Assembly (NCBI GenBank): GCA_029953675.1
Contig: JAMWBK010000010.1
Location: forward strand, 1,626,455-1,690,454
Source: Rhodosorus marinus CCMP1338
Taxonomy: Eukaryota; Plantae; Rhodophyta
DNA length: 64,000 nt
Reading direction: 5' to 3'
The notes under the pieces are model-generated. The model saw nothing but the letters and a program-made list of their open reading frames with translations. It was not told the DNA's origin and did no database searches. Positions 31,477-59,055 of this stretch are shown here, piece after piece (the stretch's first letter is position 1; each line of letters starts with the position of its first letter). A program made the position numbers and the translations under genes.

Positions 31477-33591
31477 CTAATCAATCAATCCAAGATCAAG
31501 GCGAGTCTGCGGTGCACGGAAGTCGATGAGATCAACTGAGAATTCCTCTGCTTCGTCTTCGTCTTTGTATTCGTCAACATCCTCATCTTCGGAGGTCTCC
31601 CCCTGACTTTGTCGTTGGATCGGAATGGCTCGAACAGGCTTTTCACTCAAAATTCTTTGCTCTCTCGATGTTGCCTCGTCTCTGTTGCGCAGTGTTCTCT
31701 TCTTCCTCTTTTCTATGCTCACCCTTAGGTCCTGTTCCGTTGTCCATAACCCTGTGGATGCGAAGTCCCCAGATTGGGGCTCTCCAAGCATAACGCGGTT
31801 GTCACTAATGAGTGCCGCCTCAATCGAACGCTGAAAGATTATCTCCGCTCGCGAGGTCTCTCCATACTTGCTCTCGCATGCTTCGTAGCTCCTCCATATA
31901 AGCGGGTTCGAAGGCTCCCTCTGGACAGCTTCCTCAAACAGCTTCCGGCTTTTGAGCATACTCCCAGCCTCAGCCTCAACTCGACCCCAGGCGCAGAAAA
32001 TCCTTGTTGAGTGAGGGTTGGCTTCGAGTCCATATCTGGAGAGCGACAATACAATTGAGGTCTCAGCTTACGGCTACCTCCGCGAATCTGAAACTGGACC
32101 CAAGGCATTTCACAAGCCGACTCACCGAAAGTACGTTTTTGCCCGCTCTATCTCTCCAATCTGTCTTTCGTAAGCTCCCCATGCATGCCATATCCTGTCA
32201 ACAAATTTTGACTTGGGGTTTGCCCATACACCTTGTTGAAACAACTCTCGAGCTACATCTGTATTCTCAAGTCTTGCCTCCATCAAGCCCCATGCTTGCC
32301 AAAGCGGGCAATGCTTTGGTTGTTCCCGTAGTCCTTCTTCAAAGTGACCACGCGCTGCTTCATAGTCTCCCTAAATAAATAGTGTTCCGTAAAACACGTC
32401 GAGAGTGAGTTTATCAAAAGTTGTAGTTCGCAGACGCGAGCGCAGGAGAGGGGATTCGTTCTGCACTACAAAGCAAAAAGCTACCCAAACGCATTCTTGG
32501 GTCTCATCCAGGCAGCACATTTGTTGCGAAAACATGCGCGGTTAGCCGGCCCAGTGATGCCAAGTCTGATTCTGGTGAGCGCAACCTACCTCTTTGATTG
32601 CAAGCATTCCTAGCATCTGGTGAATTACCGCGTCCCTCGGACCTCGGGAACGGCCACGAAGCAGGAGAGATCGCGCTCTGCGCGACCCTCCTCTTTCCGC
32701 GGTAATCTTGGCTATAGTTGCCAGGACATGGCTATTGTTCGCATTTGCCCGAAGAGCTCGCGTAATAAACTCCTCCGCCTTTGCGACGTTCTCAGTTCTG
32801 TATTCCAAAAGTCCGAGCGCATGATAAGTTGCCGCGTTGTGAGGGTTAACCTTAATGCCTCGCGAAAAATACTTGCGAGCCAGTTCTGTGTTGCCATGTG
32901 CATATTCAAGTTCACCCCAAACGTGCCACAAGTAATAGTTTCGGGAATCCGCCTCCGTTCCAGTCCTAAAGCACTGTCTCGCGCTGTCAACGTCGTTGTC
33001 TCGACTCTGATAAAAGAGACCCAACGCAACCCATGAAGCAGCATGCGCTGGGTTAGCTTCACAGGCTTGCAGATACAGGCTCTTAGCTCGGGAGTAGTTT
33101 CCAGTACGCTCTTCTAGTACTCCCCAAGCCTGAAGTAGATGAGAATTTCTCCTGCAGAACTGCAAGGCATTTGCAAAAATCTTCCTAGCCTCAGAAAACC
33201 GTTCCAGGCGCATTTCAAGACGAGCCAGCCCCATCCATCCTCTTCCATCATAGGGTCGCAGTTTTATACACTTAACGTACAGTTCTTTGGCCAGGTCGTG
33301 ATTCGATTGCCTTTGAGCGTTTCTTGCCCAGTAAAAAACCAAGTCAACATTAATCTTTAGGACCTGGCCAGGATGCAGGTCTGGACTGTCTCCTCCCTCC
33401 GTTACGAGGTAATAATCCTGCGCCACTTCCTCGAGGTGTTTCCTATTCAGACCGAACAAAACCTCCCCATCGTTCCTCTCAAAAACAAACCTTGCAACCC
33501 GTATCCGTTTATCTCTGGCCGAACAGCAGCGCAATGTTTCGCTCGGCACCGTCGAGACGGATCCTGAAACATTAACGAAGGAACCATGCAT
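31477..33591 (-). CDS. HAT/TPR-repeat RNA-binding protein, HCF107/Mbb1-like; multi-exon
   Basis: Repeated half-a-TPR units (RPYDGRGWMGLARLE, NSHLLQAWGVLEERTGN, NYYLWHVWGELE, HSTRIFCAWGRVE) and an acidic tail. Confidence 0.75.
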
Positions 33592-37858: not shown

Positions 37859-38163
37859 TTTCACGTCTCCAACAGCCAGCTGGGTATTACTCAAATTATT
37901 CCATATTTCGAGTTTTATTCCCCCCTAATTACTCCCAAATTAGGTAATATATCCCAATTCTATCTTGTTCTTCTCTATCTTCTTCCTCTTCTCTCCAGCT
38001 AACCTGGGAAATATCGAGTTTTGCCCATCGTACTTATACTCTTGCTCCATCGGGATGTGCAATAACTATTAAGCTCAAAAGGGTGTTGCACCTCCAGAGA
38101 TTTTGGCACAGCCCGAGCATAATTTTGCATAGCCGGACATTGCTGGAAGGTGGAGACGTCACA
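37859..38163 (-). repeat. 3' LTR
   Basis: Starts TGTGACGTCTCC after PPT GGTGGGAGGGA and ends GGAGACGTGAAA. Confidence 0.95.
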
Positions 38164-41100
38164 TCCCTCCCACCGAAGAAGAAGCGCGGGGTCGGGCAGA
38201 TTCAGCAGCACGATGAAAGTTCATGTAGTAGCGAATTTGCCTTTTTGTAGCAGAGGTTTGTGGCAACCACTGGTGAGCTGCAATCCATCGAGCATCAGCT
38301 ACTGTTTCCCCCTCGAAGTATACCATATATTCGCTGGTTCCCTCTGGTTTCATCCGATGACCAAGTACGGATGCGATTTCGCCTCCAGTCGCTGCTTCAG
38401 CTACCAACTCGGGTATGTCGGGTTGTACGTTGTCGGGAGAACCGACAAATTTCCTCAGCAGGGAAACGTGGAACGTTGGATGTACCTTCATTTCGGTTGG
38501 TAACTGCAGGGTATAAGCGACATTGTTCACCTTACGCTGGATTCTGAAGGGTCCGATGTATCGAGGTCTGAACGGTTTGGGATCTCGTAGCGGCAAGTTC
38601 GTGGTTGATAAGAGCACCATTTCGTCAGGGAAAAACTCAGGGTCACGCCTTCCCGCGTCGTAGCGGTTTTTCTGTACTTGCTTTGCGTACAACATGTTGT
38701 TCCTTGCTGCAATGTATTGGTCCTGCTGATGTCGTAAAAGAACTTCGGCTGCCTCAGGTAAGGGAGAAACGATAGCCTCCTCTGCACGTGGTACTATTAA
38801 TGTTCCCGGTAGCTCAGGGTTTCGTCCGTACAGAAGTTCGAAGGGCGAATACTTAGTAGATTCCGAGATTTGCGTGTTGTAGACCAACTCCGCCATGGAA
38901 AGATCTGCGGCCCATGTAGTTCGGGTACTGTTGCATCGGAGGTATGTCTCCAACGTCTGATTGACTCGCTCCGTTTGTCCGTCCGTTTGCGGGTGATAGG
39001 CTGTACTCAAATTCGTTCTGACCTTAAGTATACCCATCAGTCGTTGCCAGAATAGGCTGGTGAACTTAGAATCCCGGTCTGAAATTATGGTTCGGGGTAA
39101 TCCCGCGAACCGCACCCAGTGTTCGAAGAATAATTCTGCCGTTTTCGCCGCATCTGCGTCCGTCCGGGTTGGTATAAATTTCGAATATTTTGTGAAGCGA
39201 TCGACAATTACTAGGATTGCATCAGCTCCCGATGTAGTCATGGGAAGACTAACGATGAAATCCATGGTGATGTCCTGCAACTTTGTTTCTGGTACAGGTA
39301 GCGGCTGTAGAAATCCTTGTGATGCCCGGAGTGGTTTCTGCTTTTGGCAGATTTCGCACTTTCCAACCATTGATTGAACGTCATCCCTCATTGTGCGCCA
39401 ATAATAACGTCTCTTCAAAAGGTTGACTGTTTTATGGAGACCGAAATGTCCTCCCGTGGGTTCCTCATGATATCGCCGTAGTAAGTCCGGTACGAATTTC
39501 TGGGGCACACAAACGCGATGATGTTTGTACAAGATGTCCCGCTTTCTACGAAATCCCTGCTCCTCGTACTTCACTGCTTCTGGGTAGACTGCTGCGAAAT
39601 CAGGATCTTGTAGATATGCTCCGGTCCAATCTTCTTGGGATAGTATACCGGAAACCGCCATCTGGTTGATCGCTCCCCGGCTGAGTGGGTCCGCAATATT
39701 TTCCGCCCCTTTCTTGTATTCGATATTGAAGGAAAACGGCATTAAGCGATTCACATATCTCGCTTGTCTCTTGGTAAGCTCCTTTTGCGAGTGTAGAAAA
39801 CGCAAAGGGTTATGGTCGGTGCGAAGCCCAAATCGTTGGCCCTCGACGTACGTCCGCCAATGTAATACCGCTAGGGTCAACGCGTAGAGTTCCCGTTCAT
39901 AAGTGGAATACTTCTCCTCCGTAGTGGTGAACCGCTGTGAGAAGTACGCAATTGGATGTTCTCCATCTTCAAAGGTTTGCAATAACACAGCCCCTACTCC
40001 CTTGTTACTGGCATCAGTACAAATTGTGAAGGTTTTTGTAAAATCCGGATTTCGTAGTACTGGCTGCTGCATCAATTTCTCCCGCAGGGTGTCAAATGCT
40101 TTCTGTTGCTCCGGTCCCCACAGAAATTCTACATTCTTCCTCGTGAGGTTGGTCAGGGGTGCTGCTACCGGGCTGAATCGTGGCACATAGTTACGGAGAT
40201 AGCCCGTAAAACCCAAGAAGGACCTGACATCGTGCACATTTTCTGGGACTTGCCAATTTTTAAGGGCGGCTACCTTGCTAGGATCCGGCCGTCGTCTCCC
40301 ACTCCCAACCAGATGACCCAAATATTTCGTTTCTGGTACACCGAAGACGCACTTTGACCGCTTTGTATAGAGTCGGTGGTTTCTCAGCTTCGAGAAGACG
40401 ATGTCTAGATGTCTTTTGTGGTCTTCCTTATTCGCCGAGTAGATAATAATGTCGTCAAAGAAGATCATGACGAAAACGTTTAACTCGATGAAGAAAATAC
40501 TGTTCAATAGTCGAGTAAACACAGCAGGAGCATTTGTCAGTCCAAACGGCATCACTAACCACTCGTAAAGACCAAATGGCGTCGTGAACGCTGTTTTTGG
40601 AATGTCCTTCTTCTCCACGCGTAGTTGCCAGTAACCACTCCTCAAATCGATCACACTGAGATATGTGGCTTTGCCGAGAGCATCTAGACAATCGTCTATT
40701 CTTGGCGGGCTGGTCTTGTTGAGGATGGTTGCCTGGTTCAGTTTGCGGTAATCGATGCACAATCGCCGCCCACCATCTTTTTTGTCCACAAAAAGACAGG
40801 GTGAAGCAAAAGGCGGTGAGCTAGGTCGAACGAGGTTTTTGCTCAGCAAATCTTGTAGTTGAGTTTTCAGATCCTTCTGATCTGCAAGACTCATTCGGTA
40901 TGGTCTTTGGGATGTTGGTTCAGTTCCCGGTTTCAGATCAATTGTAAAGTTGACGTTTCGCCAAGGGGCCAGGTTCTTAATGTCTTCCACAAAAACGTCA
41001 GCGTATTTATCCGTAATAAATTCCTCCAGATCTTTCGCCTCTTCCAGTCGTTTTTGTGTAAATTTCGTCATATTTTTGATTTCGGGTTCCTCCGTATAAT

Positions 41101-41593
41101 TTTCAGGTTCTGGGTGGTCAGGTTGTTCAGGTTCTACTTCAGGGTTTTGTTCAGGTTCTTCTTCACTGTAATTCTCCCGGTTTTCAGGTTTCTGTTCAGG
41201 CTGAGTGACAAGTTCTTCAGCTTCTTCTGGTTGATTGCTCAGCTTGGCTTCTGGTTTAATGGCTGGATCTGTTTCAGTTTCTTCGGGGTATTCAGGTTCT
41301 TCTGGGTATTCGGGTTCTTTTTCTGGTTTTCCTTCTGGTTTGATAAGTTTATCTTCTGGGTATTCGGGTTCTTCTGGGTATGCAGGTTCTTTTTCTGGGT
41401 TTAACATCAGCAGCTGGTTTGGTAGGTCGAGTCTCGCTTGATAGTAGCTGAGGAAATCTCTTCCCAAATATCCAGGGCTCGTAGCGTCTTCAACTACATA
41501 GGGCTGCCAATCGAAGTGATGACCACCTAGTTGTAGGGTCACGTTGGCTTCGCCCAAGATTTTTATGGATGTGCCCGGCGAGGCCGTGTCCAA
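38159..41593 (-). CDS. pol: Gypsy Pol (protease C-terminal half, RT, RNase H, integrase, chromodomain)
   Basis: RLCIDYRKLN, MPFGLTNAP, IFFDDIII, TDAS, YSTYERELYA, zinc-binding H-H-C-C, SDRD and ERVNQ motifs. The protease active site LVDTGSS lies just upstream (about 41650) in a shifted frame. Confidence 0.95.
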   Translation of the reverse strand: MDTASPGTSIKILGEANVTLQLGGHHFDWQPYVVEDATSPGYLGRDFLSYYQARLDLPNQLLMLNPEKEPAYPEEPEYPEDKLIKPEGKPEKEPEYPEEPEYPEETETDPAIKPEAKLSNQPEEAEELVTQPEQKPENRENYSEEEPEQNPEVEPEQPDHPEPENYTEEPEIKNMTKFTQKRLEEAKDLEEFITDKYADVFVEDIKNLAPWRNVNFTIDLKPGTEPTSQRPYRMSLADQKDLKTQLQDLLSKNLVRPSSPPFASPCLFVDKKDGGRRLCIDYRKLNQATILNKTSPPRIDDCLDALGKATYLSVIDLRSGYWQLRVEKKDIPKTAFTTPFGLYEWLVMPFGLTNAPAVFTRLLNSIFFIELNVFVMIFFDDIIIYSANKEDHKRHLDIVFSKLRNHRLYTKRSKCVFGVPETKYLGHLVGSGRRRPDPSKVAALKNWQVPENVHDVRSFLGFTGYLRNYVPRFSPVAAPLTNLTRKNVEFLWGPEQQKAFDTLREKLMQQPVLRNPDFTKTFTICTDASNKGVGAVLLQTFEDGEHPIAYFSQRFTTTEEKYSTYERELYALTLAVLHWRTYVEGQRFGLRTDHNPLRFLHSQKELTKRQARYVNRLMPFSFNIEYKKGAENIADPLSRGAINQMAVSGILSQEDWTGAYLQDPDFAAVYPEAVKYEEQGFRRKRDILYKHHRVCVPQKFVPDLLRRYHEEPTGGHFGLHKTVNLLKRRYYWRTMRDDVQSMVGKCEICQKQKPLRASQGFLQPLPVPETKLQDITMDFIVSLPMTTSGADAILVIVDRFTKYSKFIPTRTDADAAKTAELFFEHWVRFAGLPRTIISDRDSKFTSLFWQRLMGILKVRTNLSTAYHPQTDGQTERVNQTLETYLRCNSTRTTWAADLSMAELVYNTQISESTKYSPFELLYGRNPELPGTLIVPRAEEAIVSPLPEAAEVLLRHQQDQYIAARNNMLYAKQVQKNRYDAGRRDPEFFPDEMVLLSTTNLPLRDPKPFRPRYIGPFRIQRKVNNVAYTLQLPTEMKVHPTFHVSLLRKFVGSPDNVQPDIPELVAEAATGGEIASVLGHRMKPEGTSEYMVYFEGETVADARWIAAHQWLPQTSATKRQIRYYMNFHRAAESARPRASSSVGGM

Positions 41594-41768: not shown

Positions 41769-42545
41769 CTACTGCTGCTCCTCTTTTAACTGCTGGGTTA
41801 AAGGCGGTGCCGACTTCGAGACAGTCAGATCCCGATCAGGGTTGTTCCAGCAGATCCTTTGTGTATGCCCCTTCTTCCCGCAGTAGTTGCAAACAATGCT
41901 GGTGTAGTTACGCTTCTGCAGCGCTTGCGTTCCGGGTTGGTAAATGCGTCCAGACCTGGTTCCCCTGCTTACAGTGGTCTGGGGCGTTGCCATTTTTTGG
42001 GGAAATTTCTCTTCCCGTCTGGAAGGTTGGCTGGCTGCCTCAGCTCCCTCAATTTTTAGGGCAAGTGCCTGTGCCGCCTCAAAATCCTGCACGTCCTGTA
42101 TGTAGATGTATTTCTTGACCTCGGGTTTAAGGCCTTCGACGAAGCGGTCGAATTTCTCTGAATCAGAAATTTCTCCAACCTGGATCAGACATTTGTTGAA
42201 ATATGCGGAATATGCTGCTACACTCGTTTTCTGCTCTGCCCGTGCGAGTTGCTGTTTCGCGCGGATATTAGCGTCTGCTGGGTAGAATTGCGATTTTAAA
42301 GCATCCTCAAATCCGGCGTAGCGCGTGGGTTTTTGCGATTCAGGTATCAGGGACCACCAATACGAAGCGTCGCCAGTGAGATAGCCCTCTGCGAGGGTAA
42401 TCTTGTAGTCGTCGTCGTCGTCAGGCAGACGAGCCAACTTAAAATACGTTCTCAAGCTGTTCAGGAACGTAGCAATGAGCAAAGCGTCGCGTCGCCCGTC
42501 ATAGGCTTTCGGTTGCGGGGCCTGGATCTTGATGAGTGATGCCAT
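41769..42545 (-). CDS. gag: Gypsy Gag with CCHC zinc knuckle
   Basis: Retrotransposon gag motifs (YLTGDASYWW, FVEGLKPE) and CNYCGKKGHTQRIC. Confidence 0.93.
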   Translation of the reverse strand: MASLIKIQAPQPKAYDGRRDALLIATFLNSLRTYFKLARLPDDDDDYKITLAEGYLTGDASYWWSLIPESQKPTRYAGFEDALKSQFYPADANIRAKQQLARAEQKTSVAAYSAYFNKCLIQVGEISDSEKFDRFVEGLKPEVKKYIYIQDVQDFEAAQALALKIEGAEAASQPSRREEKFPQKMATPQTTVSRGTRSGRIYQPGTQALQKRNYTSIVCNYCGKKGHTQRICWNNPDRDLTVSKSAPPLTQQLKEEQQ

Positions 42546-42959: not shown

Positions 42960-44445
42960 GACTACGTAGCGGCCTTCCCAGTCATCGGGAATGGCAGTAC
43001 ACAACCTACCTACGCTGAGCGCAAGGCTCAGAATGCCTCAGTGCGCGGAAAGCAGCACAAACCCGCACAGTAGTAACCCCAGGGCCGCAGACCCAGCAAG
43101 TTGCCGTGAGACATCAGCACGCTACGGTGGGAGGAGCTATCTGGGGACCAGAGACTACACCGGTCCTCGCCACGCTCAGGAATGTACGACCCCCGCGGCA
43201 GGATGAAGTGGCCCCATCAGACTTTGCAACGGTTCTTTTGCCAAGCATTGGGGATCCCGAGCTCTTATCTCTTATGTGGTGCACGAGGACTTCATTGCTT
43301 CCCACGCCAGCCCTATATGCCACCCAGACGCAATCCCGCTTCTCTAAAGCGCCATTACACGGGGAGTTTTAGGACAGGGATTTTCGGATCCATTTACCCT
43401 GCGACACCCCGATCGGGAAGTGACCCTGTCAACTGGCCAGGCGCCCGAGGCCGATAACCTACTGGGATACAACGAACGCCAACGCATCGCACAGGCGGAC
43501 ATCGCGGCCCAGTCACTGCAGAGGACCATCGAGCAGATTATTCGCGTCCGTTCGAGGCTTCGCAGGATGCATCTCTCTTTCAATACTCTCGCGGCACTAC
43601 ACGAGTATCTGGACACAGCTAGCGGTACTGGTTTTTTTTTTGTTGGCTGAGTTGGGCGCGATTGAGTTTGTTCGAGATTTTGGTGTGGGCCGCCATCTTT
43701 CTGCGGCTGTTACTCGCCTTTCCCGGCGTCTCCGGGTCGTTCGCGAAGGGTTTTTTGGGTGGTTTTGGTCTGGGAAGGTGGTTCCGGTAGGGGATTGGTT
43801 TATTTTTAGTGTTGGTGTTTTGCGCGGCGATATTTCGGTCATCGGCAGTGCTTGTGGGGTAGAGCTACTTGATTGGCTACATTCGGTGTGGTAGGTGTAA
43901 ACCCAGACATATGTGCAGACCGCAGACTATGTTGCAGAGCCATATGATGCCTCTTAAGGCTTCACGAAGAGCCAGAAACTCAACCACACGGGTTGAAGTT
44001 GCGTTCAGTCTGCTGCATTGCTGGACAGCTTTGGGGGTCGGTCTGTGGACGTGCTCGGATTCGCATACGCAGATGAGGTACTGTACTTGAAAGCATTAAG
44101 GGTTGACTACCAATCAACTAGGCTCCAGTTCGAAATGATGTACTTCTCTGTCAGGTACCGAGCAGGAGCAAGTCGCACGTGTCTACTGAGGAGTACCTGT
44201 GCAGCTTCCGTTGGATTCATCAAAAATAGTAACTTAGTCATTGGCAGGATGGTAGGTGCTGGAAGGGTTATCTGGGTCACCTAATCAATCTGGGGTTTTG
44301 TTTCTTTTTCGGTCGCGAGCGTGTTCGTTTACGGGAAGCACTTCCTCTGGTACGCCTTCCCCTCGATTTTCCGCGGTGCGTCGTTTGCTTTTGCCACTAC
44401 TTCTGTCTTCCGGGTGGGTGTGTTGCGGGGCCTTTCCTATTTGGG

Positions 44446-45948
44446 TTGGGTTTGGTCGATTATTCTCTCGGTGCGGTTTCATATTGGTGGTGCAACGTTT
44501 CTTTTGCGCATTCCCTCAGGATGGTAGGGATATCTCCGCGCTCGACGGAGCCTCCTCCCAAGGAGGCACTGCCAGGTGGGGGACTCTGTGTTCGCCTCAG
44601 CTGCGGCACGTTTTCTTCCGAGGTTGACTTGGAAGGCGCTTCTGGCACCCAGGCGCGTGCACTTATCTCCGCTGTCACCAGCCTGATCACGGCTGCGAGT
44701 GATCGTGGAGTGCTCCCTCAGCTCACCCAGAAGCTAGGTGGGCTGGAATCGGGATTGGTGGCCAGGTCAAATTCAAATTCGGACGAGAATTTGAATTGCC
44801 CCAGAGTGGCAGCGTTGGCTGAAGGCAGTCAACATCCGGTCAATCAACATGAACCTGTCCCGGGACAGGCGAGGGCTGTTGCTTCTGCGCGGGACAGTAC
44901 GACGTTGGGGAGCGGCAGGCCGGGCCAAAACGCGCTTCAGCGCTCGGGGACTCGAGGCAATGGTGGTGGTGACTGTGCGGCAACCGGTGTGGAGGAGACT
45001 GCAGCTGTGGACTTCCCTCTCTTGGACCAGCCCTCAGGTGGTCACCAGCTCCCGGCTAATGCGGGGGCACGTGGTGGCCGCAAGGGGGGCGCTTCGTACG
45101 CATCAGTCTTGCGGAAGGGCACCACTGCCACACGTACGGCGGCTATGCTCCGTTTCATACCATCTCGCGACCCTCAGGATGGACCTGTGGAGACCACTCT
45201 CCAATTTCTGTGGGTGCGAAATGTCCGGCCCCAGACTACACGAGGACAGGTTCCGTCTATGCGAGACTTCCGGGACACTTTTGCGGAATCGTTAGGGTGC
45301 AGCCGGGGTGATTTCTTCTTCGCAAACTATGAGGGCCGCGACGTGCTGTTTTTGGTCTCCGCAACCGCCGCCAAGTACCTGGAGGCCTAGCTGGCGAAGC
45401 CTACCGAGCAGTGGCCTGAGAGCGCCCGGTGGCCTGAGAGCGCCCGGTGGCTGCGCTGCAACCCGCAGGTGGTTTTGCACTTGGATTTTGACCGTTTCTC
45501 GGGCAATTTCCTGTCTCCGGGAGAAACGGCAGGGCTCTCTGAGCATGAGAGCAGCGTGAAGGCGGCAGCGATCCATTGGCTACGGATTCAGCGCCTTGAG
45601 AGGATCTTGTTGGAGCGGTTCCGGTCGGGCCCTCGTCACCTGCGCATGGCGGTTTCCAGTTTCCTCGATCTGGAGAGGCGACTTGTGCTGACTTCGCGCT
45701 ACAAGACAGAGCTGCAGCGGGTGGGGATTTTGGAGGGCTCTGCTTCCAGCACTACTTCCAGCGAGAGTGGTGAGGCAGGGGAGCAGACTGAGGGCATGGC
45801 GGTGGTGGACGCCCAGGTTACTTTGCTGAAGCCCGCGGGATCCGTTCCGCGAGCCTCGCGGAGTGGGCGGCTCACGACCTTGGTGCGGATAGGAGGTAAG
45901 AGAGCGAGGACCGACTCCCCCGGGTCTAAGGGGGAGAAGCACGATTAG
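44446..45948 (+). pseudogene. Family B ORF1, with one in-frame TAG at 45388-45390
   Basis: 44446-45390 and 45469-45948 are in the same frame. LWVRNVRP...DFRDTFAESLG aligns with family A ORF1. There is an in-frame 18-bp duplication near 45412-45447. Confidence 0.7.
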
Positions 45949-45979
45949 CGCTCCAGGCACGGCTGCGAGGTCGCAGCCT

Positions 45980-48900
45980 ATGGATCTACAGTCTTATGTC
46001 CTGAAGGAGGGCGGAGACTGGGGCATTTGGCGTACGCGTTTTCGGAGTTGGCTCCGGCGGTGGATTTCTTTGGAAGGAGGCTCGCTTCCCCTCCGTGGGG
46101 GCATTCCCCCAGTCGTCCTTCCTCGTGGAGACCTTCTAGTAGCTGGAACCATTCTCGATTTCATCTTCACGAGCCTGGCTCGCAACATTCGGGACACAGT
46201 CATTTGGGTTTTTCTGGGGGTCATGCCGCGGCTGATTCTGGCCCCCATTCACACATCGGAGCGCAGATGGCGAGTACGAGACCGACTGGCCCTGTTCTTG
46301 AGGGGAGACTTCGAAGTACTACAGCGCAGCTATTTGGCGTCGTCAGCACCATCCGTCCGTCGGACTCGGCATGGCACAGTGTCGCCCGTGCCGGCTCGAG
46401 TACAGAAATTGGTAGCAGCGGGCGATTTAAGTCGAGCGGCGCGGGTTTTGGAGGGCCAGGCGCCTGTCCTCCCCTACGATGATAGTCTCGCGCAGACGGT
46501 GTCGTCTTTGTTCCCTGAGTCCGACGTGGATTTGTCCCCTGAATTCGAGGTATTCTTGGACCGTCCGGAGTTGGCCAGGTTTCGCATCGATCTGACGCTC
46601 AGTGAGTCTGACCTGGAGGATTTGCTTCGTACCTCGCGTCGGGGACGCTGTCCCGGACCCTCCGGACTAAGAACAGAGCTATTGCAGGCCCTGAGCCAGC
46701 CTGGCCAGAGCGCGCTTCTGAGGATCCTTAACAAGTTGTTCCAGGGCGTATCGGGTGCGTCTGCGCCATGGGAACATCTCCGGCAGGCACAGCTTTGCTT
46801 GCTCACGAAACCTGACCACCAGCCGGCCCTGCCCACCCGCGTCTCCGGCCGATCGGGATGGTGGAGAGCCTACGGAAGTTAGCCGGGAGGTGGCTATGCC
46901 AGCGCCTTCGCCAGCGCGTCACAGCTTTTATGGCGCCCTTGCAAGTAGGGGTGGGATTTTCTGGGGGTTGCGAACTGATCACCCATGGGATCGAGCTAGA
47001 ACGCGCCAGTAGGCCGGAGTGGGGAGTCTTGGTGGTTGATTTCCGGAACGCATTCAACAGCGTGTCGCGGACGCATGCGCTAGAGGTGCTCCGACGTGTG
47101 TTTCCGGAGGCGTGGCCGTTTCTATTGGGTATTTACGGAGGGGAGAGCCTCCCCTACTTGACAACGGAGGGCACTGTTTTTCAAGCACATACTGGCGTCC
47201 AACAAGGCGAGCCTTGCGGAGCTCTTCTTCATGCCTGTGCCCTACAGCTCATACTTTTACGTCTTTCGACTGAGGTCTCGGATCTTCGAATCTGCGCGTA
47301 CCACGATGACGTAACATTGCTGGGCACCCCTGACACCCTGGCTAGGGGACTGACCGCGATCGAAGCGATTGCACGTCGCGTCGGTTTGACTGTGGAAACA
47401 GAAAAATGTCGCTTTCTCCCCGCGAGGGACGTGTCGCTGAACTCTCTGCCACCCACTCTGCGACTAATCAGCGAACGTGAAGGGTTCGAACACCACGGCG
47501 TCGGATTGGGGACTGACAACTTTGTCCAAGCATCCTGCGAGCGAGTTTTGGCACGGCACAAGCAACTCACCGACGCCATTGAGCACCTACCCGACAGCAT
47601 GCTGCAATCGGCCTGCTTGCTTTCCCGCTTTTGTGCCGGTCCCAGACTCAACTACTGGTTGCGCAGCCTGCCTCCAGCTTGGGGCTCGTGGATCGCGGCT
47701 AAAGCCGACGAAATGACCCTGCAACACTGGGGAACGCTCTTGGATGAGCCCCTCGATCTTGAAGCTGCTCCCGACAGGGACTTAATTCGTGCACAGAGCG
47801 CTCTACCGTTGCGATTAGGGGGATTCGGCGTCGCAGACCGTGGGCTGGTATGCTCGCCAGCGGCGGTTGCCTCCTGGGCTACCGCGCTGCGAACGTTGGT
47901 GACCTTCCGGATGCGAAGTGCCTGCCTCTTGGCTCGAGCTTTGACCAACGAGGATCCAGTGACCCTGCCGCCCCCGCTTTTGACAATTTATGATGGTCTT
48001 CAACACGCGTTCAGGAGGTGCAACGCCGTGCCGGACGCAAATCGGTCCCGCTTTCGTTCCTGGAGGGAGCTGTTATGGGGACGAGCTGGAAGCGATTGAG
48101 GATTGTCCCCTCGACCGAGTTCTTGCCGATGACGGAGAGGCTAGCCCCGGGTCCCCTGTTGCAGACTACCCGGGTTTGAGCCGATTGTGGAGCTCCCGCA
48201 CTGATGTGATTCAACATAGCCTCACCTGGGGCCAACACAGTGCCGCTCACACAGTCATGCTCAATTCTCCTCTCACGCCGCCTACCACTGCCGCTCGTCT
48301 CCGCGGCATGGGAGGCCACCTCTCGCACTTGTGGTTAACCACTCTACCGTCGTCATTGAGTCATCGTCTCGATGCTTTCCAGTTCCGTTCTGCCGCACGC
48401 ATCTATCTCGGTTTGCCACAGGCTCCGTGGCACTCTAATCGGCCGTCTTTCTGTCAGGGATGTGAGAGCCGGATTGACGCTTGTGGCTACCACTTCCTGG
48501 GTTCCTGCGGACTGTTGCGAGGTCTCCGTACGAGGCGTCACACTCGCCTCAAGTACATCCTCAGCGAATCTTTGACTCGGATAGGGCATACGGTTGAGGT
48601 TGAGTCGGAACTGCCCAGATCCATCTCGGACTCTGCACCGCCCCGTTGTATAGCCGATCTCCTCGTCTCCGACGCTGCTGCCAGACGCTCAACATATGTG
48701 GACCTTGCGATTACCTGCCCCGTGGCCAGCGCCCACCTCACCGCAGCCGCCCGCCGCCGGGGGGCCGCGGCTTCAGCCCTTCGAAGAGTTAAGGAACGAC
48801 GGTATGCTGAGAGCATGGCCAGTCTGCCTTGCGCTGAGGGTCGCTCTCACCGGTTCCAGCCATTCATTGTGGAAAGCTTTGGTCACGTCGATAAGTCGGG

Positions 48901-49057
48901 TTTAGAGTGGTTGCGGAAATGTTTTGCTGAGCATCCTACTGAATATTTGGCGCTCTTGAGGCGTTTAAGTGTCTCCCTTTGGCGATATTCCAGCGACATG
49001 CTTTCCGAGGCGCGCCATCGGCGCCTGGGGTTGCATGCTTCCCTCCCTAGTTATTAG
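45980..49057 (+). pseudogene. Family B ORF2 (RT, CCHC, REL endonuclease) with two frameshifts
   Basis: GRCPGPSGLR, DFRNAFNSV, GVQQGEPCG, AYHDD, LPLRLGGFG, CQGC-x8-H-x4-C, RRHT, IADL, YVDL and FIVESFG motifs across ORFs 45980-46882, 46858-48099 and 47990-49057. Confidence 0.92.
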
Positions 49058-49499
49058 TTCATCTTCACGCCTTGCGTAGCGCTTCAGGCTATGCTAGTAA
49101 AGTCCAGTCCAGTAAAGTCCAGTATGAGGGGGGAAAGAACGAAGTCCCCAACGTAGTCCCTAGCCTCGGTTTTCAACGGCTTTGCTTTAGGTAAATGGAT
49201 ACTGCAGGGGAAAACATTCCATCCGCATTTCATGTCGCTCTCCCCCCACCCCAGACTGATATTCAATTTTGTCCTGCGAAGCGCCTAACGGCCATGATGC
49301 AATGATACTCCCCCCTTATAAACCGTTTGTCTCCAATCGTTGCTTGCCGGTTTAGGTTTCTAGCTGTAGAGTATGCATTTGGATGCTGGAGGCGGGATCT
49401 TCGTTGTGCTTTGCTTAGCCTGCTTTTTCCGCTCACATGTCTTTGTTTCAGTCCCCGAGGAGACTGAAAATCCATTTCATTTGTTCTTGGAACAAAAAA

Positions 49500-49565: not shown

Positions 49566-49659
49566 AAGCAAATCTTCGGTTATGATGGGTATCCCACGGG
49601 GGTACGTTTTTTCTTTTTCGAAGGATGTCTTGGAGGCTACGTTAGTCTGAAACGGCACC

Positions 49660-51530
49660 GTCAGACACGATGGCATTCACCTCTACTTGATTCCCATTGG
49701 CACAAGGAGCTACATGCAAGCATGTAGCCACCCGCCACACATGCGGAGGATACAACGCGAGCAGGAGAAGCTTGTGCACGAAATAATACGATCCCCTACG
49801 GGTCGCCGTCCTTCGTTGAAGGCGAGTTGCTGCAGCTCCTCGGTAAGCACAGACAGCTGGTTGCAGAGCTTCGACGGCTACCTCCGGGCTTTCTCCAGTG
49901 CTCGTTGTTGCTGTTTCGGTATTGTTGCAGTCAGCGGTTAACCTATTGGCTTCGCTCACTTCCAACTCATTGGGGCCGGTGGTTGGCCACTCGTGCGGAT
50001 GCTGAAAGTTTCCGTGACCTGGGGTATTTTCTCGATGAAGAGCTGAGCGCTCTGCCGCGACCCACCTGTGATGTTGTGCGCGCCCAGGTAGGCCTCCCAT
50101 TGAGATTGGGGGGACTGGGCCTCTGCAATCGTGTTGTGGTCCAACCTGCAGCCGCAGTAGGGGCCTGGGGAACCGCACTTCCCACTTTGAGCAGCTTGGG
50201 TATCTCGAAGTTCCGCAATTTGATGGCGAGCCTCTCGCGGGGTGTCTTGCTTCCCAGCGTACCGGAAAGCGCCCAAGACTTGTTTCTGGAGCTCCAAACC
50301 GCCCTGAACTCCTGTACTAGTCTCCCCGAAACCGTTCAACCCCGTCTTCCTGACTGGCGAGCTGTATTTGACCGCTCTCGAGGCTCCGCCCCGGGGATTC
50401 GTCCTGCGCCTGAACCTGTTCTAGGGGAGATTGACCCAGTGGTTGCCGCAGAAGAAGAAGTTCCAGTTGATCCTCCTGATGATTCCCAGCGCGCTGGGAG
50501 CCGAGCTCAAGCACGCACGGATGCGCTGCAAAATATCCTTTCTTGGGACTTGCACCGTGCTGCATATGGCCGACTCCTCGCGCAGATGGTCTCATCTTCT
50601 CGCGCTCGCGCCCGCCTACGTAGTCTTGGAGGGGTTCTTAGCTCTCAGTGGCTCATGACCGTACCAGCCTTTCCGCCACTCACACTGTCGGATTTCGAAG
50701 TGCGTACTTCACTGCGCTTATACCTCGGCTTACAGCAGCCCCCTTGGCCGTACGAGATGGGTTCGTCGTGCCCTCTCTGCTCTCAGACTGAAGACAACGC
50801 AGATTTTGGCGCCCACCTGCTCGCTAGTTGCCCGGCGGTGAAAGGTGCTCGAACCCGCCGCCACACACGGATCTTGAACCTGTTATACCGGGAACTTCGG
50901 CCTATAGTCCAGCAAGCCGGTCTGGAAATCGAACGTGAGAAACCTTTACCCGTCGCGGACTTTCAAAATGATGAACGCCGTGTAGCCGACCTGGTGATAA
51001 CCTGTGACGACAGCCGCCGTACCACATACGTTGATCTTGCTGTTCCCAACCCTCAAGCTAGTCGTTATCTCCCGGCTGCGGGGGAGCGCCGTGGATCTGC
51101 CGCCGCCAGCATGAGACGCCGCAAAGAGATCAAATACGCGGGGGCTTTGTCTTCCCCTGGTGTTCGTGCTTCGGCACTAGCACATCGCTTGGTACCCCTG
51201 ATCATTGAGTGCTTTGGGTTCATGGACTCTGTTGGTTCTCGCTGGCTTCGGGAGTTGTTCCGCGAACGCCCTGACCGTCTTCAATCGTTGTTTACCCGCT
51301 TAAGTTTCCTGCTGTGGCGCATGAATGCCGCTTTGATGTTGGAGGCGCGAGTACTTCGCCGCGCTTAGTCTTTTTTTCCCCTCGGGGTTTTTTTTTTTTT
51401 CAGCCTCCGATTAAACCATTCATTCAAATAATACGATAGAGTTGAGAAGTCCGAAAGGGCTTTCTTCGACACATCCTTCCCCTCGGGCGTTTTTTTCTTT
51501 TAGCTGCCGATTAAATCATTCATTCAAATA
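49660..51530 (+). mobile_element. 5'-truncated family C REL non-LTR element with a duplicated T-rich/CATTCATT 3' end
   Basis: ORF 49827-51368 has LPLRLGGLG, CPLC...HLLASC, RRHTRI, RVADL, YVDLAV, KEIKY and LIIECFG. The unit CCCTCGGG-T(n)-...CCGATTAAA.CATTCATTCAAATA occurs twice (about 51378 and 51479). Confidence 0.9.
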
Positions 51531-53495: not shown

Positions 53496-53944
53496 CGTTT
53501 ACGACTAGCGTAAAACTGTACCTTTTACGTATGCGGAAACACTCCAAAACAATGCAGTTGGTTTCGTAGGTTTATCAAGAAAGCCGTGGAGTGTATTTCT
53601 TCACCCGTAGGAGCTACTAAGGCGACTTCTATTTGCACAAGAAGATAGAAGTGTATTCAAGGGGTCCCTATTGCTACAAGAAAGCATGCGAGATAGAGGC
53701 TTATTTAGAGACGAGAGTGTTTGTCCTAAGCAAGAACAACACAGCCAACACATAGCATTGGCCATGGTTGCCATTTCAATCCGATAAAAAATTATCCGAT
53801 TTCGTGTGTAAGTATGGGACTTGAATGTCGTAATACATATGTAACTGTAATCTTTGCAGTAACCGTAAACTTTACTGGGCAGCTGCCTACTGCAGTGCAA
53901 CACTACCTCTAATCCTATCTAGGGTGAAGTGTACTGGAACTCCG

Positions 53945-56900
53945 CTACCGACGTCTCATGCTACGTTCAAAAGAAAAAACAGGCACCAACGGATTTTCCA
54001 ACTGCTCCACGCGCAAAGCGCCTAATGCTATCTCTGCGTTACCTCGCCATAGTTGCCGGTTTATCTGCGATCTCACGTCTCTCAGCTCCTCCCTCCTGTG
54101 CAGTAGGTGTTTGCAGCTGTCGCGGAGGAACTCTTGTGCCATTTGCCCCGTACGCCCAAACGTCTCTATCGCTATCGGAATGAACTTATCATCCGGTTTC
54201 TCGATCACCATCGCTTCTTTCTAGTGAGCGATTTTCCACTTCTCCGCAGCTCTCGCCGCGTATCCGCTAGCATCTTGGCTCCGCCGCAAATATTTTCCCT
54301 GTAATGGTGACACTACCGTCACATCCAGCGCATACCTTTGTTTGGTCCTCGGATGCCTAGCAACGATATCAGGTCTCAGTCCGTAATTCTCGAAGTACCC
54401 CTCAGGTTCTTGCTCTACGTCCATGAAGTTCCATCGCCTTAGCCACCGTGTCAGCTCTCTGCAGATTTCGTCATGCCTACGTTGCCACAGTCCAGTTGAT
54501 GTTGGGTAGTGATGAAACCGTTGTACCCCAGTCCTTCCGTGTTTACTCCGGCAACTAGTGCATTTCTCCGTGGTCCGCAATCCCGGAATTGGCAGACCCA
54601 GCAGTTGTCGAACGTTTACCTGCATCTCAACCGCACTCAATTTTTTCGGTGTCAGCGTTGGTATTTCACGTAGCCACACTCCCGACCCGGATCCCGCGGC
54701 AGACCGTATTCGAGCTCGGTTTTCAGGGGAGATTCGTGGGTTGGTGACCAGCTTTTGGAATGCACAATGGTGTGCCTCTCGAGAGAGGGTTTGTTGTATT
54801 GAACCAATATTCCAAGCTGCAGTCTCGCCCGGTGCGCTTCGAAGACATGGTCCGAGCCTCCGTTGTATTGCTCGCGACGATGCACAGATCTGGTCCGCCA
54901 GCTGTGCAGTCGACCATCGTTGATCCATCGGCTCGTATGTGTCTGGTGAGCGTTCTGCCGTAACCTCCCGCTCTAGTTCAGTCAGGTATGGCCATTCATC
55001 TTCATTGTTCCGGAAGGTGTTTCTCCATGACGAGTAAAACGCGATGGGTTGGACGCGCTTTCGAGTAGCGAAACCCAAACCTCCCCAGCGGCAGGGCAGA
55101 GCGATTCGGTCCGAGATCAGCTCTGCGTACTCATCGTCCTCTACAGCTGTCGTAGCGAGGCCTCCGAATCGAATTTCCAGGTTATATCTGGTCATCACGT
55201 CGGCCTCGCGTGCCAGATTTCTTCCAAACTCGTATGCGAGGCATCGTAGCACATAGTCTAGTCGCGTTTCTGCACAGAACCTGAAGAGGGCATTTTGCGT
55301 CGTAAGCTCCGGTTGTGGGAGCTTGGCAATTTCCTCAAAGAGTTTCTCATGCTTATTTTGCAACCCCCGGCACTCCTGTTCGATATATTCTCGGCTGCCT
55401 ATCGCTATCGAGTGGATGGTGACTCCGTCTCTGGTGACTTGCACTCCAGGAATCTCATGGTTGACCACTCGCGTGGTAGTCAGTGTTCGCCCGTACACAG
55501 TGCACTTTCCGAGTTCCAGGCGTGCTCCAAGAGAGGGGAGCACAGTTTTTGCCCATGCCAGGGACGCCTTCACGGCTTGTAGCGACCCGACAATCGTGAT
55601 ATCGTCGTGGATAGCAACAATCGTTTCGTTGGGGAACTTGGCTCGCAACGCTCTTAGAAAGGGCGCCAGGGATAGTGCATGTAGCACCGACCCCAGTGGA
55701 TCTCCCTGTTGGACTCCTGTAGTTTCTTGGAGAGTCAGGCGAGAGGTGTCGGTTTCGTTCTGTCCAGGGGAACATCGCCAGCCACAGAGCGTCGGTGAGT
55801 CCGCGTTGTCGCTTCCATAGCCAAGTCTATTCACTGGTGCAAGCTCCGGCAAGTGTTCGTCCACCAGTTGCTTGGCAAGGCGTCGGTCGATGCGATTAAA
55901 GGCATTCTCAAGGTCTAGGCGAAGGACCACCGAATCGGGTTCGCATGACAAATGGGCCTGGATCGCGTGAAGTGAGCGTTCGCACCCGCCACTTACTCCG
56001 ATACCCAGTTGTAAGGGCACCAGGAGGAGCTCACGCACCCTGTCCATAACCGCGTGAAGAGTCCATTGCGTTGCTACCTTGCGCAAAACTTCTGGTACTC
56101 CGATAGGGCGAACTCTGGGATGCTCCTGCGGCACTGAACCCTTGTTAGGCTTCGTGAACGGCGGGAGTCGACTACTGCGAAGGGCGCGTGTCAGAGCCGG
56201 GGAAAATTTCTCAGGAGCGGTCGCCAGTTGTCGCAATACACGAATCAACGCCACTTGCGTCTGTTGAGTTGCACCTTGGAGGTGTTCCGATCGGAGACCG
56301 CTAGGACCTGGGCTCTTGCCCTGAGGAAGACGTACCACGATCGACATGAGGCCCTCGTCGGCCGCTTTTCTTGAATCCCACCGCCGCTTTAGTGTTTCGG
56401 TATTCAGAGCGAGCAAAGATTGCAGTGCGTGTGCAATCTCGTCTGGTAAGTCACCTTCCGCCGGGTTGGGAAAGAGCGCTTGTAGTTGTCTCCACGTAGC
56501 CGCGGTAAAAGGTGCCATTTCGGTGGCCTGTAGGCTCCGAGCTGCATCTGAAAGGCGGCCAAGGTGTGCTAGTTTCAGCGCTCGCTTGTGGCGCCCGAGA
56601 TGTTGGCGTCGAACCGCTTCAGCTCCTTGCGGTGCGGTAGTATGCGACAGCATAGACGCCTTGTCCTCTAGAGCACTCCAGACCGTAGAGAATTCTCCTT
56701 CAAGCACATGCGATACCTGAATGCCAACATCAAGTGCAGAGTGTCCAAGGACAAGACCTGGAAGTCCGACAAGAAGCAGGCTGGCGTTTGCTGGTGCGGT
56801 GCTGTCCATAGAGAGCTCTAATGCAGCACGGAAGAGGCAGCTCCATGTGTGAACCTGGGCGCGTGGCACAAATCGCCGTGTGGGAACCGGGCAGTGTGTA

Positions 56901-57034
56901 AGGCGCGTCCACTGCCTGCCTCCTTCCGTGACGTCGTCGACGAAGACGCTCCACCGCCTGATCCAGTCTTGACGATCCGAGAAGAATAGAGGCTCTTCGC
57001 GGCGTCGTTTGATTCCCCTACGTCTGCTCGGCAT
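53945..57034 (-). pseudogene. Family A ORF2 (RT and REL); single in-frame TAG at 54221-54223
   Basis: GKSPGPSGLR, RPIGVPE, DLENAFNRI, GVQQGDPLG, AIHDD, RRHDEI, LRPDI, ALDVTVVSP and IPIAIETFG. ORF 53945-54211 is in frame with 54221-57034. Confidence 0.92.
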
Positions 57035-58618
57035 TATTGGGCTGGGTTTTCCTGGCTCTCCTGCGTGTCCATCGCGTGATGGTTGCCGTCAAGGGCAACC
57101 TGTGTCCCAGTGGTATCCTGTGGAGTCTCCACGGCTGCCGGAGTCATCTCAGTATCCGGTCCGGTGCCATCGGCGGCTACTCGCGAGCGCTTCTGTTGAG
57201 GTGGCTCCGGAAGGTTGCAGAGGAGCTCCGCATGGGGATTGTCCTCGTGTGCTGCGTTGTCAGGTACTTGGGAAGTCGCACTGGTCTCAACCGGGGCGTC
57301 AACTCTTCCACGGTCTGCCTGTACATCCCCTGGAAGGGACGAGGCTTCAGGGTCTGCGCTCGTGGCGGCGGCAGGCGCTGGGGGTTCCGCGCTCTCCCCG
57401 GGTACCGTTGGAGTACGTTGTGTGGCTTGGAGGGCTCCGAGTCTGCTCTCCAGGTACTCGTGTATCGCTGCGACTGTGTTGAACGGGAGTTGCCTTCTGC
57501 GAAGTCTCGCGCGGATCCGGATAGTCTGTTCAATCGCCCGTTTCAGGGTCTGAGCCCCGATATTCGCTGGGGCAATGAGCTGACGTTCATTATAGCCCAA
57601 CAGGTTGTCTGTATCCAGTGCCTGGCCCGTGTAGAGAGTCACTTGCCGATCGGGGTGTCTCTGGGTGAACGATCCGAAGATGCCCGTCCTGAAAACGCCC
57701 CGAGAGATGGCGCTTTGTAGAATCGGAATCGCGTCCGGATGGCAGAGTAAGCACGCATGGGAAGCGATGAAGTCCACGTGCGCCACATAAGAGCTCGGAA
57801 TCCCCAAGGCTCTGCAAAGGACCGTGGTGAAATCCGATGGGGCTACCTGGTCCATCCGTGGGGGTCTTACATTCCTCAGGGTCGCCAGTACCGGCTTGGT
57901 CTCAGGTCCCCAGGAGGACCCTCCCACAGTGGCGTGCAACTGTCGCAGCGCTGCCTGCTGGCTCTGTGGGTCCGGGCGCCCGGCTGGTCGGAGTTGAGCC
58001 TCTGATTCTCGAGCTGGAGTACTTTGGGCAGTCCTCTGAGCGTACGTTGGCCGTGTGCTGCTGGTACCGGCAACAGGGAAGGCCGTGGCATAGTCCAGTG
58101 AGGCAAGGACACCTGTCCCCTCCGCAAGTTGATTGATGATGGGTTCTGCCGCATGTTGATTGACCGCCGCCGTCCGCGGGTGCTGCTGCTGGGGTTGAGG
58201 CGGGGTCGTAGTGGCTCGTCCGTCTTGCCACATATGCGGTTTTTTGGCGAGCTCATTCAGACGTCCTGTCACTGATTGAAGTTCTTTTGAGCAGTTGATG
58301 CGGGAATAGAGGTTGAAGGCGGCCTGGTAGAAGTCGGCGATGTCCGACTGGCCGATTCCCAGCGCTTGGTAGCACTGGTCGTAGCTGTGCAGCTGGTGGA
58401 GAAAGGCGACAGCTGGGTCTGCTGTGGCCTGCTCCGTTGCAAGGTGTTCCCCTCTCTCCTTCCTGTGCTGCTCCCTTGTGCTGGTGCTGTTACTGCTGCT
58501 GCTGCTGCTGCTCTTGTAGCAGCTCTTTCGCCCTCTCCATTTCGCGGGTACCCGAGGTGTGTGGGCCCGCGATCACAAGAGGCTCGGGGTACGGCCCGCG
58601 TACCTCCTTCACAATCAT
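57034..58618 (-). pseudogene. Family A ORF1 (disrupted near a CAG/polyQ tract at about 58490-58515)
   Basis: MIVKEVRGPYPEP matches MIEKKMLGPYPEP at 36524. The rest is collinear with the split ORF1 at 36524-43620. Confidence 0.8.
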
Positions 58619-58714
58619 ACTTGTAACTTTTTATCACCTTTTTCCGTCGTTTTCCACAAACAAAGCCGTCCAAAACCCCAGACTAACGTAACGCAAACAC
58701 CCGAGTGCCAATTG

Positions 58715-58925
58715 GAATGGAGTATAACCCAGAAGGTTGTCTGGGTCCAGCGCCTGGCCAGTGTAAAGGCTTACTTGTCTATCGGCGTGTCGTTGTGTGA
58801 AGGATCCGAATATCCCAGTCCGGAAAACTCCTCGGGAGTTGGCACTTTGGAGAATCGGAATTGCGTCTGGATGGCACAGCAGGCAGGCATGGGAGGCAAT
58901 AAAGTCCACATGCACCACATAAGAG
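58715..58925 (-). mobile_element. Duplicated internal fragment of family A ORF1
   Basis: SSYVVHVDFIASHACLLCHPDAIPILQS...DNLLGY nearly duplicates 57595-57795. Confidence 0.88.
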
Positions 58926-59055
58926 CTAAAAAAAAAAAAATAAACACTGCAAACCCTATGATTATTTAAATCGATCTGTCTCCTCTCCCTCTCATAGGAC
59001 ACCCACCCCCGGTTGTAAGTATTTTTAGGACAAACCCGGCCGTTGTGGTAGAAGC

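Follow-up and report, generated by a model that had tools for sequence, protein, structure and literature searches.

The window analyzed here, a stretch of 64,000 nucleotides (nt) of nuclear DNA from the red alga Rhodosorus marinus, contains two families of non-LTR (non-long terminal repeat) retrotransposons, A and B, in which a predicted R2/CRE-type protein is preceded by a separate gene of new type. The second open reading frame (ORF2) of both encodes a reverse transcriptase (RT) followed by a C-terminal CCHC motif and a restriction-like endonuclease (RLE), and a first frame, ORF1, lies upstream of it; a preliminary description of the region had recognized this two-ORF arrangement, and it holds for both elements. 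ORF1 is a genuine gene under purifying selection. By every sequence comparison made, its product is an orphan, restricted to this lineage and lying outside all ORF1 families described in the libraries searched, those of the trypanosomatid CRE elements included. The R2/CRE-type ORF2 core is known; a lineage of RLE-type long interspersed elements (LINEs) with an orphan ORF1 is new. The frames of the two elements are as follows.

57034..58272, minus strand: ORF1 of element A, 412 amino acids (aa) from a GTG at 58272 to the stop TAA at 57036-57034
57430..57909 (aa 122-281), minus strand: conserved ORF1 core, an alpha/beta part with RNVRPP, HxD-x4-H-x5-HP and RGVFRTGIF, followed by a helical hairpin rich in arginine
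57032..57036, minus strand: stop/start overlap UAAUG of ORF1 and ORF2 in element A
53945..57034, minus strand: ORF2 of element A, 1029 codons, with an in-frame TAG at 54223-54221, after which the same frame resumes to 53945
Within A ORF2, minus strand: RT at 56116-55595, CCHC-like motif at 54562-54542, RRHDEI at 54481, RPDIV at 54376, LDVTV at 54328
44446..45948, plus strand: ORF1 of element B, first ATG at 44521, in-frame TAG at 45388-45390, core at 45181-45693
45980..49057, plus strand: ORF2 of element B, broken into three frames by two frameshifts, with RT, then CQGC...H...C, RRHTRL, ADLLV and YVDLAI

Selection on ORF1 is evident from the ratio of nonsynonymous to synonymous substitution rates (dN/dS). 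Between A and the A copy on another R. marinus contig, L001, which are 80% identical, the ratio is 0.19 over the core (160 residues), 0.67 over the C-terminal tail and 0.38 over all aligned codons; between B and L003 (60% identical) it is 0.14, whereas for the two recent B copies it is about 1, the value that dead insertions should show. The ORF1 proteins of A and the L001 copy are 88% identical over the aligning stretch, and the protein annotated on the latter, P0001, is 84% identical over 72% of the A query; the closest database protein to A ORF1 is NDN08_004843, from assembly GCA_029953675.1. Across subfamilies from independent data sets the core keeps 35-48% amino acid identity. A third subfamily carries ORF1 and ORF2 together on a 4.2 kb contig (L004) of JGI sample 3300016967, presumed to be a transcriptome; its two frames overlap in AUGA. 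The ORF2 on an MMETSP transcript is 76% identical to that of A. Because they are transcribed, the elements may be active.

It could be objected that ORF1 is no functional gene but a mere open stretch in a GC-rich 5′ region, given that the open frame of copy A does not begin with an ATG and that many spurious ORFs overlap in that region. Four observations oppose this objection: the low core dN/dS between diverged copies as compared with recent dead ones, the conservation of the core across independent data sets, an intact B ORF1 of 494 aa on L001 (13322-14806), and the stop/start overlap with ORF2, which is kept in both A and L004. The dN/dS values effectively refute the objection, which we regard as scarcely conceivable. 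The L001 copy is also intact across the site of the TAG in B and has a sense codon there, so that this TAG is a point mutation and not a programmed readthrough.

Assignment of ORF2 to the RLE class does not depend on the RT alone, which is the sole domain found by Pfam (RVT_1, E 4.6e-8 in A and 2.5e-12 in B). A profile of the ORF2s of A, B and a third, 5′-truncated family, C, matches solved R2 proteins in two stretches (E 7e-20 to 1e-11), as compared with E 0.004 for the ORF2 protein of L1. Downstream of the RT there follow a CCHC motif, which reads CQGC..H..C in B and CPLC..H..C in C and has lost its last Cys in A, then RRH(D/T) and (R)PD/AD...(L/V)D, the last two aspartates being spaced D-x13-15-(L/V)D; together, the CCHC, RRH and PD...D motifs are the signature of a predicted restriction-like endonuclease. 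In element C the stretch HLLASCPAVKGARTRRH aligns to R2 residues 949-983 (E 0.0013). Pfam searches of all ORF2 pieces at E up to 1 gave no Exo_endo_phos match, which would have indicated an apurinic/apyrimidinic-type endonuclease (APE). As the preliminary description had stated, neither the ORF1s nor the ORF2 N-termini contain C2H2, CCHC or Myb motifs (Pfam and regular expressions). The ORF2s of A and B are 31% identical.

ORF1 itself is built of three parts: a low-complexity N-terminal region, the core of about 160 residues, and a low-complexity tail that is acidic in A. The layout is alike in A and B, with the basic hairpin at the corresponding place (it begins at 57555 in A and has an isoelectric point of 11.8; 11.7 in B) and, after it, a short basic patch in the tail that resembles a nuclear localization signal (NLS), KRSR / GKRAR in A and B. 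The AlphaFold2 (AF2) models of both, although of low confidence, draw two long helices C-terminal to the alpha/beta part. Family A carries in addition an invariant H-x-D-x4-H-x5-H-P-(D/G)-A, with three histidines and one aspartate, followed by RGVFRxGxF (57700-57760, minus strand, aa ~171-190), and these His and Asp residues might form a metal site.

Searches for relatives of ORF1 returned little beyond its own families. Pfam at E up to 1 gave no match for the ORF1s of A, intact B, L004, P0005 and P0006, the ORF1 profiles matched no PDB sequence, and two metagenome scans for ORF1 gave no match. A hidden Markov model (HMM) of the A core, run against 1.84 billion representative proteins, returned four proteins, all of family A, and no B-type or trypanosomatid protein. 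Word-indexed searches yielded one match for A ORF1 and two for B ORF1, both of the latter from Logan assemblies. The preliminary description had left room for an ORF1 family already described in the CRE clade; none was matched in Pfam, in PDB or, for A, among the 1.84 billion proteins.

The 5′ limit of A ORF1 had been placed at 58618. This position corresponds instead to the ATG of a short upstream ORF (uORF) in another frame, within the leader:

58273..58672, minus strand: 5′ leader of element A, with a 42-codon uORF at 58618-58490 in a frame other than that of ORF1

The peptides that had been quoted are nevertheless all present, those of A in the 412-aa minus-strand ORF and those of B in two plus-strand stretches, 44446..45387 and 45394..45945, between which lies the in-frame TAG. 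The uORF terminates in a (CAG)6 run (58510-58493), whereas the ORF1 frame, open from about 58569, has no start codon before the GTG at 58272 and no ATG before that at 58233 (residue 14). Since the ATG at 58618 is in another frame and the ORF1 frame has no start upstream, the N-terminus formerly reconstructed for A assumes a frameshift; ORF1 of this copy either begins at the ATG at 58233 or was frameshifted within the CAG run. In B the ORF1 contains a 6-codon duplication, WPESAR, and a spacer of 31 nt, with no stop/start overlap, separates it from ORF2.

The relationship between the two ORF1s is best approached from their ORF2s. In an RT tree that comprised only the Rhodosorus families and relatives found by search, A, L004 and B form one clade (support 100/99) apart from single-ORF relatives, in agreement with the earlier proposal of a distinct lineage. 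As the two-ORF families form one RT clade, common descent of their ORF1s is plausible. The nearest other relatives come from marine metagenomes and from the euglenozoan Diplonema papillatum and have single long ORFs of ~760-1300 aa; no recognizable ORF1 homologue was found upstream of ORF2 in the relatives L005, L006, L007 and L008, the last being too GC-rich to judge. One of them, a distant single-ORF RLE element in an ENA metagenome contig (L006, 2334-5753), has a 2A-like peptide, GDIERNPGP, about 70 residues from its N-terminus; such peptides have been reported mainly in APE-type LINEs (PMC3708506).

Direct comparison of the ORF1s gives a weak signal that is confined to one stretch:

57796..58047, minus strand: the sole stretch of A ORF1 with above-chance similarity to B ORF1, TYAQ...GPET...RNVRP...PSDF...LGIP

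BLASTP aligns TYAQ...GPET...RNVRP...PSDF...LG with E 0.021 and the C-terminal half with E 1.5. By hhalign, the first two profile pairs gave E 0.021 and 0.024 (probability 2%), and the deepest profiles, with L004, L002 and P0005 added to A, gave E 0.0017 (probability 15%, 65 columns). When the cores were compared with shuffled sequences, z was 3.3 at standard and 5.1-5.7 at lax gap costs, and remained 2.7-5.2 when shuffling was restricted to blocks of 10-40 residues; with the first ~40 residues removed, the remaining core gave z 0.4-1.2. Because the signal vanishes in this way, only the first of the blocks that had been claimed as shared, RNVRP...DF...LG, is modestly above chance, whereas the pairs RQVTLYTG.../PQVVLHLD... 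and AAIHEYLESRL/AVSSFLDLERRL score as shuffles do. The test that the preliminary description had itself set, a significant alignment of the two ORF1s, leaves the shared domain unestablished, the best value being the E of 0.0017 just given.

The families could thus each possess an ORF1 of their own, the RNVRP block being due to chance or to convergence of a short RNA-binding peptide. This would agree with the profile-profile probabilities of 2-15%, with the return to shuffle level beyond the first ~40 residues, with the absence from B of both H-x-D-x4-H-x5-HP and RGVFRxGxF, and with the failure of the A profile to retrieve any B-type protein. Nevertheless, the matches in the first block fall on residues that are invariant in family A, namely N, P, D, L and G (...N.RP...D...LG); the layout is common, with the basic hairpin at the matching place and the NLS-like patch after it; and the ORF2s are sisters in the RT tree whose 31% identity would leave the faster-evolving ORF1 near the detection limit. 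We consider independent origins improbable, if still to be reckoned with, and homology of the two ORF1s rather probable. The sequence evidence is suggestive, and ORF1 of B is probably a very diverged homologue, inherited from the ancestor that the two-ORF families of Rhodosorus share.

An RNA recognition motif (RRM) has been considered for the ORF1 core. AlphaFold2, working from shallow alignments, gave a mean predicted local distance difference test (pLDDT) of 42 for A and 54 for B. The low-confidence B model shows the helix-strand-strand-helix succession expected midway through an RRM, and then the two long helices; the A model differs and renders the would-be β1 segment as a helix. Foldseek against PDB with the B model, the better of two poor ones, produced no E below 0.27, and its matches with probability 0.4-0.6, at most a hint, were solely the RRM-fold RNA-binding domains of two proteins, DbpA and YxiN (51-57 columns). 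Eight canonical RRMs, each confirmed as RRM_1 by Pfam, were combined into a profile that hhalign aligned with B (E 0.08, score 14.7), placing LWVRNVRPQTT...FAESLG in the register of RNP2 and helix 1; the corresponding scores were 14.3 with the profile reversed and 11.1 +/- 1.4 with its columns shuffled. With A the same profile gave E 0.24, and neither comparison is significant. Pfam at E up to 1 found no RRM in the ORF1s, which is no evidence against the idea, since RRMs of ORF1 proteins (ORF1p) are known to escape sequence searches (PMC3905857).

Were the core a true non-canonical RRM, as in the ORF1p of L1-like and Jockey-like elements, too diverged for detection, the RNP2-like LWVRNV strand of B with its following helix ending in LG, the alpha-beta-beta-alpha order of the B model, the restriction of the Foldseek matches to DbpA and YxiN, and the precedent of RRMs invisible to sequence searches would all find their place. 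The scores do not bear this out: the hhalign values for B and A are poor and that of B barely exceeds its reversed control, Pfam is silent, every Foldseek match has an E above 0.27 and was obtained with a poor model, and the A model puts a helix where the first strand should be. We hold this identification to be unlikely. More doubtful still is the wider proposal that the core is a genuine RNA-binding domain, of RRM fold or otherwise ORF1p-like, in an early-branching RLE lineage, in which pairing of the RNA 3′ tail with resident tails may replace a DNA-binding N-terminus. If this were true, either the ORF1p-type RNA chaperone would predate the switch from RLE to APE, or LINE ORF1 would have been invented independently at least two times.

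Copies of these elements tend to lie behind one another. The features that bear on their ends are the following.

58673..58689, minus strand: 17-nt motif GTTACGTTAGTCTGGGG, directly adjoining element A on its 5′ side and read either as the 3′ tail of the copy before it or as the target
8454-8464 (minus), 31225-31235 (minus), 36408-36418 (plus), 36440-36450 (plus), 49639-49649 (plus), 58679-58689 (minus), 63538-63548 (plus), and outside the window L001 10347 and L009 ~1048: cores of the motif
49650..51368, plus strand: element C, 5′-truncated member of the third family, from the thumb of ORF2 to the RLE, preceded by ACGTTAGTCTG at 49639
53859..53944, minus strand: 3′ untranslated region (UTR) of element A, with the palindrome GGCAGCTGCC, then CCAGTAAAG (AGTAAA, a hexamer like a poly(A) signal), then a (G)GTTAC tail
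53859-53895, 53465-53490 and 28141-28158 (minus), 36367-36392 (plus), and L004 4092-4112: copies of CTGCAGTAGGCAGCTGCC
Plus strand: 3′ end of element B, GCTAGTAAAG and then TCCAGTAAAG repeats
58709..58927, minus strand: isolated A-type ORF1 fragment (aa 160-232, 89% identical), just upstream of the 5′ junction of A

The sequence ACGTTAGTCTG has eight exact occurrences in the window against 0.9 expected. It lies directly 5′ of full-length A, of element C, and of 5′-truncated A copies, that in L001 being joined at ORF1 residue 69 and the A-like one in L009 near residue 93. In L001, at 36336-36422 of the window and in L009, the motif runs on without a break from the 3′ UTR of a preceding element, which in L009 is of C type. 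Two other identities of the 17-nt motif were considered and rejected: it is not the elements' own 5′ end, as it is present at 5′-truncated copies and continues an upstream 3′ UTR at three loci, nor part of an RNA gene serving as target, as Rfam and tRNA scans of the window were empty. Most simply, the motif would be the 3′ tail of these elements, and a new copy would insert immediately after the tail of one already resident. That the copies stand behind a tail motif and not in a host multicopy gene is an indirect indication of a different mode of target recognition, as had been suggested.

The 3′ ends agree among copies. A-type 3′ UTRs consist of GGCAGCTGCC, then CCAGTAAAG with AGTAAA (AATAAA in L004) and (G/A)GTTAC units, and several copies have GTTAGTCTGGGG as well; this region is kept at L001 10281-10361, at 36336-36405 and 28120-28190 of the window, and in L004 (GGCGACTGCCCAATAAAG). 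The 3′ ends of B are stacked head to tail at 36963-37760 and 60056-60389 of the window and at L001 17381-18554. A solo motif of ~19 nt, gggttACGTTAGTCTGggt (~31205-31255, minus strand), lies between perfect 12-bp direct repeats, CAATTAGCTCTA; with its core at 31225-31235, it looks like a tail-only, extremely 5′-truncated insertion with a target-site duplication.

Further observations concern the same ends. A TAGTCTGGGG unit is repeated about four times at 36410-36470. The element CTGCAGTAGGCAGCTGCC, which contains GGCAGCTGCC, stands directly before AGTAAA/AATAAA, is common to several families and is a candidate for an RT-recognition or 3′-processing signal; a rearranged second copy lies ~400 nt downstream of A. 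The isolated ORF1 fragment at 58709-58927 is preceded by T14-AG, and its ORF1 homology ends, right after ...NL(L/I)G, at the point where that of P0004 (L009) and P0005 also ends; the common break could reflect a deletion derivative or non-autonomous family, or a hotspot of template switching. At L001 10361-17956 the A copy ends inside ORF2 exactly where the B copy starts, with a microhomology of TATGT, and stacked B 3′ fragments come after B.

To account for the whole, we propose an RLE LINE with a lineage-restricted accessory ORF1p, an explanation that we favor with some confidence. In the model, the element RNA would be bicistronic, ORF1 being translated first and ORF2 by termination-reinitiation at the UAAUG. 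ORF1p would bind the RNA that encodes it through the basic helices and the alpha/beta core, forming a ribonucleoprotein particle (RNP), and would help this particle into the nucleus. There, ORF2p would nick the DNA and copy the RNA by target-primed reverse transcription. New copies would land preferentially behind the 3′ tails of older ones, giving rise to head-to-tail arrays of 5′-truncated elements.

Several points weigh against this explanation or parts of it: (i) homology of the A and B ORF1s is statistically unestablished after BLASTP and three rounds of hhalign with growing profiles, and the motif most conserved in family A (H-x-D-x4-H-x5-HP...RGVFRxGxF) is missing from B; (ii) the structure models of both are unreliable, at pLDDT 42 and 54; (iii) the first in-frame ATG of A ORF1 is only at residue 14, and a frameshift may lie farther upstream; (iv) A ORF2 and B ORF1 each contain a single in-frame TAG, so that these particular copies are probably dead; (v) the 3′ end of A itself is devoid of the GTTAGTCTGGGG part; (vi) the solo motif at 8454-8464 follows the stop of a host gene (8475..9782) by 10 nt with no element nearby; and (vii) the B copy of L001 starts inside A ORF2, so tail specificity is not absolute. 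Some chimeric 5′ junctions could also have been made by RT template jumping between element RNAs. RNA binding, oligomerization and translational coupling of ORF1p are proposed by analogy with L1 and SART1.

Elements of families A, A′, B, C and D are packed together in the window as a nest, along with many 3′ fragments. The full extent of B and the remnant of A′ are:

44296..49124, plus strand: element B, 97.8% identical to L001:13172-17956, with TCTGGGG preceding its 5′ end
42960..43626, plus strand: A′ copy, a degenerate A-type ORF1 (66% amino acid identity), whose 5′ part at 37767-37857 is split off by a gypsy LTR element

The inserted element, an apparently intact Ty3/gypsy-type LTR retrotransposon (37858-42959, minus strand), interrupts the A′ ORF1. 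Its LTRs (37858-38163 and 42654-42959) are 306 bp long and 99% identical, its gag lies at 41769..42545 and its pol at 38159..41593, and a degenerate relative is present at 3-4348. Elsewhere, a 184-bp segment within the ORF2 region of family D (29853-30036) is 98.9% identical to 32685-32868, which is inside a 349-aa ORF (32542..33591) resembling a host gene with tetratricopeptide/half-a-tetratricopeptide (TPR/HAT) repeats; a recent small duplication or a transduction may account for it. Public annotation lists the two frames of these elements as ordinary hypothetical genes (P0001, P0009; on L001, NDN08_004843 and NDN08_004844), and the elements are relevant to the annotation of red-algal genomes.

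A red-algal RLE lineage with a selected ORF1 bears on when, and how often, LINEs gained an RNA-packaging protein. A lineage devoid of zinc fingers and Myb domains whose copies are stacked behind their own tails bears on how RLE elements choose targets when they lack a DNA-binding module. ORF1 also offers structural work an orphan protein family, so far from Rhodosorus only.

RLE-type LINEs are seen as the oldest LINE architecture, with a single ORF and with targets found through zinc-finger or Myb domains, ORF1 being a later addition of APE-type elements. Older accounts of SLACS and CZAR gave them two ORFs. The RLE clades, CRE included, are essentially single-ORF (PMC12278014, PMC2881922), with R2 as the model of such an element (PMC2881922), and for most trypanosomatid CRE elements a curation of 2025 reports one ORF where two had earlier been described (PMC12278014). 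The RLE-type clades CRE, R2, R4, NeSL and HERO are mostly target-specific (PMC4640811). The Rhodosorus elements, whose closest relatives of known structure are R2 proteins, share with R2 and other RLE LINEs the RT, the CCHC linker and a predicted C-terminal RLE of PD-(D/E)xK type with no APE, as well as 5′ truncation and non-random integration. They differ from R2, R4, NeSL, Utopia, HERO and CRE in having a separate conserved ORF1 and no N-terminal zinc finger or Myb domain in ORF2, and from the site-specific RLE LINEs in that, by the Rfam and tRNA scans of the window, they are not in rDNA, small nuclear RNA, tRNA or spliced leader (SL) genes; their 3′ ends are of AGTAAAG/GTTAC/TAGTCTGGGG type and not poly(A). 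With the CRE clade (CRE1/2, SLACS, CZAR) they have in common the RLE type, and relatives of the Rhodosorus ORF2 occur in another euglenozoan, Diplonema papillatum; unlike CRE, they are not inserted in SL RNA genes and have no poly(A) tail, and their flanks are the tails of other copies.

Comparison with L1 and Jockey concerns ORF1. As in those elements, ORF1 is under selection and lies directly upstream of ORF2 on the same RNA (L004 contig), and its core is flanked by fast-evolving low-complexity regions and includes a basic segment that appears suited to RNA binding; by analogy, its role would be RNA binding and RNP formation. Unlike the ORF1p of L1 and Jockey, it has no RRM, C-terminal domain (CTD) or CCHC knuckle detectable by Pfam or regular expressions, and no sequence relationship to them. 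It departs from L1 also in that no coiled coil is recognizable N-terminal to the core, where the sequence is of low complexity, and in having long helices only after the alpha/beta part, according to the AlphaFold2 models, coiled-coil propensity not having been computed. SART1 of Bombyx is an APE-type, telomere-specific element with translational coupling through UAAUG. The UAAUG of A and the AUGA of L004 resemble it and might act likewise, whereas B has a 31-nt spacer. Among LINEs that target tails or microsatellites are Dong in R4, some HERO elements and Zepp of Chlorella (see PMC4640811). The Rhodosorus elements are like these in forming head-to-tail arrays with each new copy right behind an older 3′ tail, and unlike Dong, HERO and Zepp in that their tail, either a complex motif of 17 nt or an AGTAAAG repeat of 10 nt, is neither a simple microsatellite nor poly(A).

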